Shown: in pieces, positions 51,063 to 58,641 of the stretch
Position numbering within the stretch: position 1 is the first letter of the stretch
How the letters are laid out: the number at the start of each line of letters is the position of its first letter
Origin: Auanema rhodensis
Lineage: Eukaryota > Animalia > Nematoda
Length of the DNA stretch: 64,000 nucleotides
NCBI GenBank assembly: GCA_964057225.1
Contig: OZ059898.1
Coordinates: forward strand, 4,092,001-4,156,000
Direction: 5' to 3'
Position numbers and translations under genes: made by a program
Notes under the pieces: generated by a model
What the model saw: only the letters and a program-made list of their open reading frames with translations
What the model was told of the DNA's origin: nothing
Database searches by the model: none

Positions 51063-53175
51063 TTAAAGAAAATTAGGGCAGTTGGGAGAGCATCTGAAAA
51101 GCAGTTATTGTAAACGCTAAAACAAGTGCAACTTACAAACAGTTCATTCCTTTATTTTTACCCGCTGTGTAAGTGAAAGTTAGTTCTTCTCCTAAATTGT
51201 GTATAAAATAAATGAACAGTTAGAATATGAAGTACCAAATGAAATCTTTCTGTTGCAGAGAAATACTATATGATTAATAATCGGATTTTGAGCATTGTAC
51301 ACATTAATTGGTACCAAATTAGGATCACAAGAATGATTAAAAAACCTACAACAGTTATTTTAATTACAAAGTAAAACTGAGCCATGAAGCATACCTGGTT
51401 TCATTCCCTCGCTTCAAAGCATCTACGCAAAAATTAAGTTGCTCATCGTTATGACCCTAAAACGATAGATATACTGCAAATAAAAATGGGAATACATACA
51501 ACAATATCAAAAAGATATGAAACGTTATCTTCATCTATCTGAGAAACAGGTAAAATCTAAAAATTTAGGCAATATAGTTCAGGAAATTTAATTTTACTCA
51601 ACTTCACCGACGTACCGGCCTATGTAAGTTCGAGGCGCTAAGTTTTCAGCTGCTAGGATGCTCCAGCCTTTATTTGGACTATCGTAGAACAAAATGAGTT
51701 TAACTTTTCTTTTTTTCTGTAAATTGTTTATGAAGAGGAAAACAAAACTTGCATACATTTACAAAACTACTTGAGCACTTCCCTTGGCATGAACAGAGAA
51801 TGCCACAATCTACAATAAAGTCTCCTCGATTGATCCGTCCTGTGATTGATCCATTTTTCGTTTTTAGTTGACTTTTATGAGTATACTAAAGTGGACCTTG
51901 ATTATGTATTGCTTAGAATATACTTACTGCACTGGTACAACATTTCCTTGCGCCACACTCATCTTTGCAATCACACCGTGATAATTCTATATTATCATTT
52001 CGTAAAGCCACACTAGATAAATTTTCGAAATAAACTCGACACTCATCATTTAAGACGTATCCATTAATATACTATACAGTTACAAAATAATATGACTTTT
52101 CAAGTTAATAACAAACTTCGAAGCAAGGTAAAACACGATGAGTTGTCCAGTTTTCCACGTATAATTCTGCTTCGCCTTGTAAGTCATATATATCTGCTAA
52201 CGTTTTCTCAAACTTCCTCAGACAAAGAATGTAATCACTCCATTCCGAAAAATTTTTAGAATCCACTTCCTGAATTTGAACTTTTGTCAATGTTATGAAA
52301 AATATTACTTACAGTAAATTCTTTTCTCTTTGTATAATTAGGATACAATCTCTCAAAATCAGGACCATATTTTTTTTTCATGTGACCTGCTAACCGTGTT
52401 ATAATTTCTTCACGTTGTTCATATTCTGTAATCTGAAACAGAATACTTAGCTGTGAAAGAAAATAATATTATACAATGTTTGTATCAGCAAAATCAGATA
52501 CGCTAAGCCACCACTCCTGATTCATACTATTTAACTCATACCCTTTCCATAACACCCGATATGTATATTGATTGCATTCCTGAAACATCTTCTAAGCATA
52601 AACAGTTTTCAAAACTTGACAAACAAATCGCTTATTCAAGACTAGATCAATTTCATAGTCACCCTCTTTTGTTCCTTCAGGGGTATCCGAGACATATTCC
52701 TCTTCAAGCAGTTTATGCAATTTAACCTTGTCAGTACCAGTGTGGATAGGAGCAGCATTGAATTCTGTGATAGAGAAATAACAATCTTGCAATATAATTA
52801 AAACAACCTTTGAGAAATCCTTCAGTTTCACATAAGTCTTCGGTATTAATAGCTGAAAAAGACTTTAAACAATGCTTCATTTGCAGAATGTACCATTTTG
52901 TTCAAGAAGATATTCTCCCAGAGTTCGTGTTCGATTTTCAACCATACCATTGTCATACAATTCTCTGAAAGTACATATTACAAATTGTCGTACCATAAGT
53001 TACATATTCTTACTTAAAAGTCAAAAAACAATCTACAGTTTTATAAGTGTTAGTATATTTCTTTTTAAAATCGGTCCGCAACTCTGAACCAGATCTTGAA
53101 CTATAAACACGGGCAAAATATTATTTAAAAAATTTTAAAACATAAGTGTTGAATATACCTGTCAGTTGAATCCAT
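51063..53175 (-). CDS. SUV39H/Clr4-type histone H3K9 methyltransferase (chromo-preSET-SET-postSET)
   Basis: Chromodomain YEIDLVL...YRVLWKGY...EWW at about 52480-52660; Cys-rich pre-SET (CDCKDEC..KCC, DCGILCSC); SET motifs KGWSILA, YVGE, VDA..RGNETRFFNHSCDPN and GEELTFTY; post-SET CLCSPNC. Confidence 0.85.
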
Positions 53176-53676
53176 TTATGATAATATAATATTTCTAGAA
53201 CAAATAAGTAAGGTAAACCTCAATTTTAAAAAAATATTAATAATTGAAATAAAGTTATTCATTAAAACATAATAGTGAAATTATGTCTCGTATATTGGCG
53301 TCCTAAATGTAAATGGGCGGGAGACCCTGCTCAGTTCAGTTCCATGTGAAGAAGATTTTATTTAGAAACTGTACAATCACAATCAGAGTAAAATTAATTT
53401 TTCTATAGTTTCGGTTATATTGTTTCAAATATGCTTTCAAAACAATTTGTAATCATTATAATTGACTTGGCTATTTGAATTTTGAAATGAAAAGGATATT
53501 TGCGCGTTCAATATGATGCATTCTTTAACAAAAAGTTCCTCTGTGGCTCAGTTATACAATAATAATTTTTTAAAATTAAACACTATCATTTTATTTAATA
53601 ACAAAAAAATATCAAAGTTTATTCAATGAACCGTAGTGACCAGTTCTGCTAAGTACAATGAAATAATTAGTATAGA

Positions 53677-55624
53677 TTAAGAATCTTTTATGAAAGAAAT
53701 TCGCCATCGTTTTTTCTTCTCTCTGCTTTTATCACGAAGAGCACTTTTCGGTAGCTTTGGTTCTTCTTTATTTACAACAATGGACGAACCAGATGCTGAT
53801 GTTGCAACAATATTATCATTGAGACGAAAAGATGCCAATGATCTGTTGTTTCACCATTTTGAAATAATTAATGAAGCGGTGGAAGTAAATACCTGGATGT
53901 ATCATCTACTCTTGACTCATCAATCATGTTCAGCGAACGCAGTGATCTGGTATCATTTTGACAATTCTGAATAGCAGGATATAATTTCTTTACTATATAT
54001 GCGAGCTAACATTAGTAACATTCATATTTAAGGAACGGAGTGAGTGCCGATCTGATTCATTCATTTTTGCCATCATTTCCTTAAACTCAATATTGTGCTA
54101 GGGATAAAAAGAATAATTACTTCATATAACTCATTCCATACGACGTCAGCTACTTTAACTCCAGCTATAGGTTCTATGATACTTACCGATGCTTTACCAC
54201 GTATCTAAAAACATTACTATTTGAGAACATTGGGTATGTTTTGTTTTCGTTACAAAGTAAAGTTTCCTTTTTTTTAACTACGAAACGTTGAATACGACAA
54301 AAAAAGAATAACTGGGCCCTAGTGTCTGTGACATTTCAATGTTGCTTATATCCTATGTCTCCTTTTGTGTATATATTGTGTTGTCGGGAGCTAAGAAGAC
54401 AGTCTCTCTTACAAATGGCCCCCATGGGGAATGTTGGAATAGGACAAATCTGCTCATTTCCATCTATTTGGTGCCAATTTGTCAAATAAGGTCACATAGA
54501 TGGGGACACTCAAGAGTGTTAAATGCGTCTTTGACTTTAGCTTGAAGAACAGCGATTATTCAGGATCATTTTTTCGAAATAGTCAGAGTATTACTTTTAG
54601 AATGAATTCGCAAATACTGAACCTTGGTTTCTAAATCAATCATTTGTTGGAAGAAACCAATATTGGGGCATATAATATTGCGACATATCTGTACATGCTT
54701 ATAAGCATCGTGAAGAGTCATTCTAAACATATTGTTCAATTAAATGATCAATGAGATTTCTTTCACTTCTCTATACACATCAGGTAAGCAATAGCAAATG
54801 TTGCAGAACGTGATATTCCCATAGCACATAGAAGTAAGCATCTACCAGCTGTTTTACGAGTATCATCAATTTCCTAGAATTGTTGATATATTAAATATTT
54901 TATCGAGCTCTTACTTTGAAAACTGTGGTCCAAAATGGAGCTAACTCTGTTGATTCTTCGTCCATCAAAGGGATATGAACTACACGCATATGTGGTGGCG
55001 AAGACAGACGAAACCCAGGTATGAGGTTTATAGTACAGCTGAATTTTGCTAAAAAAAGTAAGCAAATAAGATGAATTTTTATTATGTTATAAATGTTTTT
55101 GCTTGTAAAACTATGTTCGTCGTAAGCTCACCAGCTTTTTAATGGCTAAGTAAGCGAGCTTAATCGGAAACGCTTGGCGAACTTCCGATATCCCTCAATC
55201 GACCGAGCATAAGGTTGGACTTAACCGGCACGATATGTTATTGAATACACTTCAACCCCTATCCATTTTCATATCTATAGAATTTTTCTGTAATTTTTTT
55301 CTATGTGATTCATGTCATTACATTGAACACGCAAAAACTATACAAAACTTGAATTGCATTAACAATTAATTCAAATTGCCTTTGATGAATAGTTTCTATA
55401 AATATTGCTTTCATGGCCTAAGAGAATAGCAAAACTTTATAATTTCAATTATTCGATATTTTCACGTTGTTAAGAATTTACATTTCCTTATTTTTCTGTA
55501 TTTAATAAACTAATCACTTACAGAGAACACGAGGAGATAATCCTGCTAATCCACCTACATACAGGAAAGGTCGAATTTGAGAGCACAGTCTGGATTCTTT
55601 GTGTATAACACGACGAGAAGTCAT
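53677..55624 (-). CDS. Atypical dual-specificity phosphatase (DUSP14/18-like; resembles C. elegans ZK757.2 as recalled from memory)
   Basis: Exon 1 55624-55522 (MTSRRVIHKESRLCSQIRPFLYVGG...) splices in phase 1 to 55048 (KFSCTINL...IPLMDEES). Cx5R loop LLLCAMGISRSAT followed by AYLM and ICPNIGFFQQM. Stop at 53677. Confidence 0.9.
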
Positions 55625-55632
55625 TGTATATT

Positions 55633-56670
55633 ATGTTATTCGTAACTTCTAATTATGTGAAGTCTTTCTCAATATCACGATTGTTCCTTCTAATTTTGAT
55701 TTCTTTTGTGATTGGAGGAACGTATGCTCTGAAATGCTATGCTTGTACTTTCTCATACAATGAAATATATGATTTGGACCACAAGTAAGTAAATTCATGT
55801 TTAGCAAACAATTGTATCAATTGTTTAAATTTTAAATTCTATAAAGTTATTAAAAAGAAAAGGAGAGGATCAAGAGAAATAGAGTTTCTTGAGCTTTTTT
55901 TAAGAGAATATGGGAAACACAGTGAAAGGTCTGAGGAGCGAAAGAAATTTAAAGCTACTGAAACAAAAATAATCGCAAGAACGAGAGATAAATGACAGTT
56001 TAATAATTTAATATGGAAAGCACTTTGCAAGGCAAATTACAAACATCTAGTTTGAGGCTGATTTCAGAGATGACGGCTGGTGCACGAACGAGTCACTAGT
56101 TCTTTTCGATCCCGAAGAAACGTCGAAAACGTGTGCCCCTTGGGAGAAGTTCTGTGTGGTACGTGATAGGCGAAAGACTAAATATGGGCGGAACTAGAAC
56201 TTGTGTTGTAAAAATACCGTATATTAAGATAATTTTTAAATAGTACTTTAAATAGAAAATTTTCGGTCAAGATCGACATAAACAAATTTTGTTGTATATA
56301 TTGTTTTTAGACAGCTGTTACAACTATAAACACTGTGTTTACATCAGTTTCAAGAGGGTGTGGAGAAAGATGTAGTGAATTATGTGAGTCAGACGGATAT
56401 GGTCATAATCAGGTAAAGAACTTCAAAACTAATTTTTCTAATGATATGATTTTTAACCGAAACTTGCAGGTAAACTGTGATGATTGCTGTGAAACTGACT
56501 TGTGTAATGCAAATTTTTCTGTTCAGTATTATCAAGAATTAATGGCCAGGTAACTAAATAATGAATTACTTGTAAAATAAATAATTTTCAGACAATATAC
56601 ATCATGGATAACACCTTTGTCAGGAGAATTAGCATGGAACCGAAAATCTGGGTTGAAATTTCCATATTAA
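55633..56670 (+). CDS. Secreted Ly6/uPAR (three-finger, quiver-like) protein
   Basis: Signal peptide then LKCYAC...WC...C...FC...SRGC...C...C...CDDCCETDLCN (12 Cys). Five exons in consistent phase; in-frame stop at 55606 upstream of the ATG. Confidence 0.88.
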
Positions 56671-58641
56671 ATATTTAATAAAAAAACTTTAAAAATTTGA
56701 TAGATGCTACATAATAATAAAAAAAAATATATATATATAAACAACCAAACATCATATATTGAGTTAGTTGAGTGCAAAATTCAATACCAAAAATGTTAAT
56801 ATTGGAAAAGTAGGAAGGCTGAATATAAAGGGTAATTTTCCATTGTAGTAATAGAAAGAATATAAGGGGAAAAAGTGAATGCATACTATTGCAAAGAATT
56901 TATATATCATACTAACTAGTAATTTTCATTCAAGAAAAGAAAAGTTAATTGTAAAGCATTTATGTATTTGTCTTTAAAATTATTTTTGAAGTACTATAAA
57001 AAATCTTAAAGATCTTTTAAGGTCTAACGATCATATAAAAAAATCAAATTGACTTGCTCATCAAAACGATGAATGTGTAGTAGAGTAGGATATTGCTATA
57101 AATCTGTGTATTACGGCTACGATTGCTTTTTCGGATTTTAGAAGGATTTTCTATGACAATGGAGCAATTATGCTAAGCTATTCATTCTAAATATAAGAGA
57201 AGATTTTGTACGAACAAATAAAGAAAACAAAATTAAAAACAAATATATACTAAATTGAACGAAAAGAAATTAATTCAACGAAATAGTCTCGAAGATATGT
57301 TAACTAATATTCCCATGGAATCGATAATATTCACGAATCAGGTGTTCTAGTCTCCCGTTTTCTATTGATTTTTTTTCTATTTATTTAAAAGAAAATTAAT
57401 AGCGAATGAGATAGAGTCTTTAAAATTAAACAGACCTGCCATATGCATATTGTTTCTTTTAAAAATGTAAAAGAAATAGTTTTTAAAAAGAAGTCATACA
57501 TGAAAAATTATAGTTAAGTTTAAGTCTAATCTTGTTGCATTCAATTGTGTGTTTGCAAGGGTCAAATCGCCCCTTGTAAAAGAGATTGAAAGTTCATATT
57601 TTTCTTCAAGTTGTTTGGTAGGCAAAAGCATAACTTCGAACCGAATCGACATCAAAGGATTTGACTAGGCAACTATCATGCCCATCTCTTCAAATGGCAA
57701 GCCCTCATCAGCCGGGTAAAGAGCAGAGCTGGGAGCACGATTAAAGCGAAAAGAATCAGACTATGAAACTAGTTATCGGAACTCCAGATCAGAAATACGA
57801 AGAGCAGTGGCAAACAGAGTAGTTAGCCATTAATAGGAAAAGAAATATGGACAGAAAAGAGGTCTGATGCATAGCAGGCAGATAGAGGAACAGACATCTG
57901 CTTTGCTAGCTACAAGAACAAACGGAACAATTCCACTGATTTTCTCATAATAAACATCAGAATATAGCGCATAGGTAGAATACATGTATCGAAAGCAAAA
58001 ATAACTGATTAATCAGGTATAAAAATAATTGATCTCAACATTTTCATAATTCACAACCAAAATAATGAAAAAAATCCAGTTGAGATGACACGAATTCGTT
58101 TCATAGATAGCTAGAGGCATTTTCTTCAAGCCATTGTATTTTGGCTAGACGATCTATAAGTCATAAGTTGTTTTTTTCACTCAAGTATTTCGAAAAACAT
58201 TCTTGTAGTTTTATAACTGGCATTATGTCGAAAATCTAGATGACGGATATGAAAGTTGGACCAAACGAAATGTTCTAACAGCAGAAGCAAAACCAATTCC
58301 CTAAGGATTGTACACTGCCTATGAACTAACTTCAGCTTTCATATTAAAATGAGTACTCAAGCTTGAATACCCTGCAAGTCATTAGAAAACAGGTTAACAA
58401 GCTAAAATGCATTTCTATAGCTTGCTAATACAAATTCTCCTTATTAGGCAAAATTAAGATAGAAGATCATGATTAAACTATTATATTTATTCAAAAAGCT
58501 GAACAGTTTGAGAAAAAAAAAAGCCAAACCGGTAAATTATTTTTATAACTTTTAGTTTATCCTCCTTGAAACCATGTTTTCAACATGGAAATAACAACGA
58601 CAGCTTCATACATTTCATTTTGAAAATAAACCCATTTGTGA

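Follow-up and report, generated by a model that had tools for sequence, protein, structure and literature searches.

The stretch analysed here is a 64,000-nt window of Auanema rhodensis contig OZ059898.1 (positions 4,092,001 to 4,156,000 of assembly GCA_964057225.1), to whose own numbering all coordinates refer. It encodes, on opposite strands and with start codons 8 nt apart, a predicted dual-specificity phosphatase (DUSP; minus strand) and a predicted protein of the Ly6/three-finger type (plus strand). Very probably, these genes constitute a real and ancient head-to-head coding pair that overlaps at its 5' ends, in which the first exons form a single block (55522-55784), the promoters converge, and the layout has been locked across clade V of the nematodes. 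The arrangement is far beyond chance, since the orthologous pair lies start-to-start in six other nematode sequences.

The phosphatase ATG is located at 55624 on the minus strand (CAT at 55622-55624) and the Ly6 ATG at 55633-55635 on the plus strand; the spacer read between them (55625-55632) is TGTATATT on the plus strand. Directly upstream of each start there is an in-frame TAA (55633-55631 on the minus and 55606-55608 on the plus strand). Neither open reading frame (ORF) contains another in-frame Met before its essential part, that is, ahead of the DUSP fold or of the signal peptide and first cysteines, so both ATGs are regarded as start codons. An initial annotation of this DNA had placed the two ATGs, the 8-nt gap, the stop codons, and an octamer and a TAATTAG motif discussed below, and all of these coordinates were found correct when the sequence was read again. 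Its claim that neither ORF can be extended upstream also holds, the in-frame stops and the RNA joints identifying both as genuine first coding exons. Exon 1 of the phosphatase (55522-55624, minus strand) comprises 34 codons plus 1 nt and ends in the donor CT/GTAAGT (in nucleotide sequences a slash marks a splice site); its RNA joint to 55048 (CT..AC, skipping 473 nt) was found in all four RNA runs. Exon 1 of the Ly6 gene (55633-55784, plus strand) encodes the signal peptide together with cysteines 1 and 2 (LKCYAC) and ends in the donor AA/GTAAGT, with a joint from 55784 to 56068 (GT..AG) in three runs.

RNA across the two start codons

The RNA evidence consists of the assembled contigs of four runs of one study (X1-X4), the only public runs containing the locus; as these contigs carry spliced sequence, the runs are RNA. 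The contig graph is made of 31-letter words, so a path between two mRNAs requires at least 30 nt of common coverage, and the assembly clips 22-nt tips of spliced leader (SL) sequence. In X1-X3, a single contig of 933-937 nt runs through phosphatase exons 4-3-2, then through 55522-55784, and then through Ly6 exons 2-5. Because no single RNA carries introns of both strands, two mRNAs must have been merged in it, and a merger through a path of 31-letter words implies shared coverage of at least 30 nt. With ATGs 8 nt apart, an overlap of that length means that at least one leader covers the start codon and coding sequence of the partner. The antisense 5' overlap proposed in the initial annotation is thus borne out by one spliced contig through both mRNAs in three runs, and the expression of both genes on which it depended is evidenced by spliced contigs from four runs. 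The extent given there (55524-55648, about 125 nt) has to be replaced by an overlap of 30 nt or more, probably of 100-260 nt, within 55522-55784.

The RNA-continuous block 55522-55784 measures 263 nt and is bounded by the donors of both first exons, that is, by outward-facing 5' splice sites. The depth bins beside it match the block alone to the decimal (for example, a depth of 46.5 over 33 of 197 positions yields 7.79), and for bin 55358-55554 the positions 55522-55554 and one further contig (record 4) suffice to explain the depth. Since the bins leave nothing unexplained, 55396-55521 and 55785-55948 are free of RNA, and both mature 5' ends therefore lie inside the block. Intron and outron sequence is otherwise absent from the contigs, the exception being one 3.2x piece in X1, and unprocessed RNA of the pair is below detection in them; in C. 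elegans, ordinary poly(A) RNA-seq shows no outron signal (PMC3730107).

Run X4 suggests the length of one leader. In this run the Ly6 contig has a depth of 4.2 and lacks its 5' part, and the phosphatase contig (34x) reaches 55730, 106 nt beyond the ATG, suggesting that the phosphatase mRNA has a leader of about 104-106 nt, antisense to Ly6 codons 1-32. The RNA ratio of the two genes differs about 8-fold between X4 and the other runs, which is the only hint of regulatory coupling; coupling by interference, double-stranded RNA or co-regulation is possible. Another gene nearby on the minus strand (52624-53190, four short introns) has a depth of 43 in X4 and of about 3 in X1 and X2 and is absent from X3; this increase of about 13-fold indicates that X4 is a different kind of sample, possibly by sex or stage. 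Across the start-to-start junction the contigs of the four runs show 0 differences from the window. Neither A-to-G nor other differences were seen in the contigs, which drop rare variants and are thus silent on editing.

The start-to-start layout in other nematodes

Orthologous loci, both genomic sequences and RNA contigs, were collected by a profile-free search with phosphatase exon 2 followed by word searches with the resulting matches. When the A of the phosphatase ATG is taken as the reference, the A of the Ly6 ATG, on the opposite strand, has the position -9 in the window, -14 in Auanema sp. JU1783, +1 in Pristionchus fissidentatus, P. pacificus, Haemonchus contortus and a second strongylid represented by RNA contigs (L010-L013), and, as inferred, +19 in Caenorhabditis bovis. 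The synteny that the initial annotation had named as a check is found: in all six of the other sequences the orthologues lie start-to-start, at distances of -20 to +13 nt. At position +1, the state of four sequences (the two Pristionchus, H. contortus and the second strongylid), both ATGs share one CATG palindrome; the gene ranges at NCBI (L003, L006, L008) overlap by 2 nt in P. pacificus, 2 nt in H. contortus and, as annotated, 8 nt in P. fissidentatus. This CATG has been lost in C. bovis, where the sole Met ahead of the signal peptide is inside the phosphatase coding sequence. Probably, the CATG state is ancestral and the window a slightly relaxed derivative of it.

Other dimensions of the layout are conserved as well. 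Throughout the window and the six sequences that keep the lock, phosphatase exon 1 always measures 103 nt and the end of Ly6 exon 1 falls on one and the same codon; the block from donor to donor measures 202-263 nt. These comparisons date the lock back to the common ancestor of Pristionchus, the strongylids and Auanema/Caenorhabditis, or earlier. The RNA of other species adds to this picture: the two-mRNA chimera seen in the window occurs in 24 strongylid RNA contigs from many runs, and a Pristionchus-like RNA contig (L014) contains an unspliced phosphatase leader of 110 nt, without SL, that is antisense to almost the whole of Ly6 exon 1.

Automatic annotations tend to shorten one of the partners, which the layout of the pair explains. 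The Ly6 model of C. bovis (L009 4921) starts at the Met of NEMYD and loses the signal peptide and two cysteines, that of Auanema sp. JU1783 (L007 4918) falls short of the candidate ATG by about 70 nt, and in the strongylid contigs (L010-L013) the phosphatase is called from Met-55.

Leaders, promoters and alternative explanations

In the mechanism proposed here, both mature mRNAs would begin inside 55522-55784, through initiation or trans-splicing there; with 5' ends inside the block, each leader is the antisense of the partner's first coding exon. Because 8 nt leave no room, the transcription starts must lie downstream of each other, and each promoter would have to sit in the first exon or first intron of the partner, that is, the promoters would be convergent. 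The phosphatase leader may be about 104 nt long or longer, starting at about 55728-55730 and possibly SL1 trans-spliced at ATTTCAG/AG, and the Ly6 5' end may be at 55522 or beyond. In both genes, the first intron exceeds all other constitutive ones in size (473 and 283 nt vs 41-152 nt). Intron 1 of the phosphatase (55049-55521, minus strand, delimited by RNA joints) probably houses the Ly6 promoter or outron, and intron 1 of the Ly6 gene (55785-56067, plus strand), in which there is no RNA contig, could be the seat of upstream control of the phosphatase. Within the former, a block of about 48 nt (55143-55190) with inverted ATCGGAA..TTCCGAT elements (GGAA cores) is about 80% conserved in Auanema sp. 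JU1783, the remainder of the intron being unalignable with that species; the block was not found beyond Auanema. The low-depth X1 RNA contig at 55193-55395 begins just after it, and the block may be a control element, either the Ly6 promoter or the start of the outron. Another candidate in this intron, TATAAATA at 55397, was dropped as it is not conserved in Auanema sp. JU1783.

The best candidate for a minus-strand (trans-)splice acceptor is ATTTCAG/AG (55735-55729, exon from 55728), placed inside the Ala-Leu-Lys-Cys codons of Ly6. The end of the X4 phosphatase contig, 55730, is the last base common to the genome (..TTTCAG) and to canonical SL1 (..TTTGAG). This offers a lead: the contig ends where a break in the word graph is expected if SL1-joined and genome-colinear reads part at this point, and a cap site at about 55730-55740 would look alike. 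The canonical 22-nt SL1 is present in 1,267 genome copies, mostly in a tandem array with a period of 251-252 nt (G000:C3:6741531-6768501 and beyond). No SL1-bearing loose end was found in the X1-X4 contigs or in L010-L014, from which the assembly clips such tips. A phosphatase leader starting at 55728 would contain no upstream ATG; the next minus-strand ATG, at 55756, would open an upstream frame, in the phosphatase frame, that ends at the TAA at 55651-55649.

According to this mechanism, the lock would persist mainly since moving either gene breaks the promoter or leader of the other, with regulatory coupling possible on top, and we infer that mutual embedding is the most economical reason for its persistence. 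It is not an absolute one, and several points weigh against the proposed arrangement. The X1-X4 contigs are unstranded, and 5' ends, strand, local depth and SL junctions cannot be read from them. The argument from X4 presumes that the coverage of 55625-55730 is phosphatase RNA and not sparse Ly6 reads, and the bridging 31-letter words could stem from a minor fraction of molecules. In addition, the lock is relaxed in Mesorhabditis spiculigera, in which Ly6 is still the divergent neighbour, about 700 nt off, and TTTTTTCAG precedes the phosphatase ATG; no Ly6 gene was found near the phosphatase in the loci of Steinernema carpocapsae or Gnathostoma spinigerum. The lock is therefore not indispensable.

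Among the rival explanations, the best survivor, though an improbable one, is the precise model of the initial annotation, in which the octamer ACTTACAG (55516-55523; CTGTAAGT on the minus strand) serves both strands, the phosphatase is spliced at TAATTAG (55650) and the overlap is confined to the 125 nt of 55524-55648. One half of its shared element is firmly established, since the RNA joints of four runs prove the use of the octamer as the donor CT/GTAAGT of phosphatase intron 1 (55522/55521). The other half, a plus-strand TTACAG acceptor at 55523 for SL or cis splicing of Ly6, has points in its favour: of the plus-strand AGs ahead of the Ly6 ATG, that of TTACAG/AG is the best; there is no RNA left of 55522, so that a Ly6 transcript initiated in the intron must be cut there or later; and canonical SL1 is abundant in the genome (1,267 copies). 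The plus strand has no ATG before 55633, as had been noted at the outset, being ATG-free over 55416-55632, and only 2% of the ATG gaps in the window are that long. Against this half, no plus-strand joint or loose end at 55524 is found among the X1-X4 contigs, which clip SL tips, and the antisense AG is not conserved with the lock. The motif is kept in three of six species, and ACTTACAG/AG, with its CT/GT context, in Auanema sp. JU1783 and H. contortus; C. bovis (..TTACAC), P. fissidentatus and P. pacificus have lost the AG and kept the lock, which makes a shared splice element dispensable to it. Moreover, the AG arises automatically from a Leu-Ser codon pair (CTC T/) ahead of GTAAGT. As for TAATTAG (55650, ending at 55649), its use as the minus-strand acceptor is unlikely, the X4 contig passing through it up to 55730, and it is a poor acceptor in comparison with ATTTCAG at 55729.

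A coincidence at the same donor deserves mention. Read on the plus strand, the spliced junction of phosphatase exons 2 and 1 (55048/55522) gives ..ATTTTGAG/AGAAC, with TTTGAG as in the 3' end of SL1, so that only from the 7th base upstream onwards could an SL1-Ly6 junction at 55524 be told from the antisense of phosphatase mRNA. The likeness is probably due to chance, yet it would confuse unstranded read counting.

A second alternative, also improbable and slightly more so, is that the leaders measure from a few to about 15 nt, that the bridging contig derives from rare pre-mRNA, outron or read-through, and that only the primary transcripts overlap. Nematode trans-spliced mRNAs often carry very short leaders, weak AGs are available at 55617 and 55620 (plus strand) and at 55646 and 55649 (minus strand), and contigs accept low-abundance words. 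Such a source of the bridging contig is hard to reconcile with the lack of intron and outron sequence in the contigs save the 3.2x X1 piece, with an X4 contig extending to 55730 when Ly6 is nearly absent, with the 110-nt unspliced phosphatase leader of the Pristionchus-like contig, and with the recurrence of the chimera in 24 contigs of another species; the longer overlap of the mature mRNAs within 55522-55784 is thus preferred. Finally, an artefact by which misassembly or faulty gene models join unrelated ORFs, a danger that the initial annotation had raised, is practically excluded by the identity of contigs and window across the junction in four runs, by the single copy of the locus in the 181-Mb assembly and by the equal neighbourhood in six other sequences from independent projects.

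The two genes and their significance

The phosphatase gene has eight exons and 278 codons, with seven CT..AC introns taken from RNA contigs of the four runs. Exons 2-8, placed by RNA joints and reading frames, are located on the minus strand at 55048-54915, 54873-54767, 54722-54623, 54204-54121, 54079-54011, 53966-53893 and 53842-53680, followed by the stop codon at 53679-53677. Protein searches with the window were made exon by exon, the spliced proteins being joined only for reading-frame checks. All eight exons are colinear with residues 1-292 of C. elegans ZK757.2 (UniProt P34680), exon 1 being identical to its residues 1-34 at 26 of 34 positions, and they share about 95% identity with the protein of Auanema sp. 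JU1783. In searches against the Pfam domain DSPc (PF00782), exon 3 scores 36.6 bits (cut-off 33.5; profile positions 66-98) and exon 4 scores 21.8 bits in the consecutive positions 101-132; a full-length orthologue reaches 94 bits. The predicted active-site loop LLLCAMGISRS (within 54769-54873, minus strand), identical in ZK757.2, keeps the Cx5R and the following Ser of the motif HCxxGxxRS, with Leu in place of the His before the Cys. This replacement occurs in every orthologue (P0005-P0052), ZK757.2 included, with Phe in some clade III/IV relatives. The minus-strand gene is the orthologue of ZK757.2 (DUSP14-like) and is predicted on this homology to encode a DUSP. The C-terminal motif we take to be of the DUSP14/18/21 type, an assumption that goes by the names given in the sources ('DUSP14') only. 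Sequence searches of the PDB with single exons gave weak or irrelevant matches (exon 5, 28 residues, vs a nectin at E ~1; exon 2 vs poxvirus-type DUSPs at 14-16 bits).

The phosphatase transcript is also processed alternatively. The major form joins 54623 to 54204 (depth about 40-59), removing a 418-nt intron (54205-54622), and unspliced contigs at 54177-54652 (depth 8-16) retain this intron, in which a stop codon occurs at 54566-54568. The intron-retaining form would give a protein of 162 residues without the conserved C-terminal half. ZK757.2 has been called DUSP14-like and NHR-23-dependent in spermatogenesis, and a mutant with a STOP-IN allele in its exon 1 is viable with normal brood (PMC9635660). 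No match for ZK757.2 was found in the transcription start site (TSS) supplements of Kruesi 2013.

The Ly6 gene has five exons and 167 codons, its four GT..AG introns being taken from RNA contigs. Exons 2-5 (56068-56158, 56311-56412, 56470-56549 and 56592-56667, then the stop codon to 56670; plus strand) are likewise placed by RNA joints and frames. The encoded protein (MLFV..GGTYA/LKCYAC ... NCDDCCETDLCN) has a signal peptide, 12 cysteines and a CCxxDLCN ending. The four exons that follow the signal-peptide exon are 68-88% identical to the strongylid orthologue, which matches PF00087 (Toxin_TOLIP) with 24.8 bits (cut-off 21.2) and QVR with 22.6 bits, below the cut-off of 27.3. Taken exon by exon, the short Ly6 exons of the window gave no Pfam match, and a word search with exon 1 (51 residues), in a length window that excludes full-length relatives, gave none either. 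The hydrophobic glycosylphosphatidylinositol signal, typical of many Ly6 proteins and not defining for them, is lacking; the C-terminus QYTSWITPLSGELAWNRKSGLKFPY is non-hydrophobic and is kept in the strongylid protein. The tail encoded at 56592-56667 (QYTSW..PL.GE..WNRK..FKFPY) is common to the strongylid (L010:101-571:-) and Pristionchus orthologues. Altogether, these features suggest a Ly6/three-finger protein that is probably secreted. An Rfam scan of 53000-57500 gave no match.

Head-to-head cis-natural antisense pairs are a defined class (PMC9477841), and convergent promoters of mammals initiate antisense RNAs that overlap at the 5' end (PMC11735407). The genes of the window are on opposite strands and divergent (CT..AC vs GT..AG introns on either side of the block) and, as far as unstranded contigs tell, overlap at their 5' ends only. 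The pair is therefore of a known kind, of which it is an unusually tight and ancient member. It resembles these systems in mutual transcription through the start regions and in promoters that face each other within a few hundred nucleotides, and differs from them in that both partners are protein-coding with an overlap over the first coding exons, that the ATGs are 8 nt apart (one CATG in relatives) in a layout kept across nematode families, and that trans-splicing may set the mature 5' ends. At divergent promoters of C. elegans, reverse-strand starts are found about 120 bp upstream and the transcripts do not overlap (Chen et al. 2013, PMC3730107). As in the window, one short region serves divergent genes and, outrons being removed, the mature 5' end is not the TSS; unlike there, the transcripts of the window pair converge and start downstream of each other. 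In the literature search, no paper was found that describes the head-to-head layout of this pair.

Coding pairs that abut start codon to start codon and are kept in this way across nematode families are rare, and this one illustrates how a gene neighbourhood can become frozen when promoters and leaders are embedded in one another. A further step, in which the lock has been a functional unit since the base of clade V, with convergent transcription or a duplex of 100-260 bp acting as a switch or feeding small-RNA/ADAR pathways, is rather unlikely; an example of such a switch would be a sperm-expressed phosphatase versus a somatic Ly6. If true, the pair would be a conserved and genetically tractable animal model for coding-coding 5' antisense control. 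Should C. elegans ZK757.2 have the same neighbour, the pair would be a simple system for distinguishing transcriptional interference from co-regulation at convergent promoters, and edits of exon 1, such as the STOP-IN allele of ZK757.2, would alter the leader of the partner.

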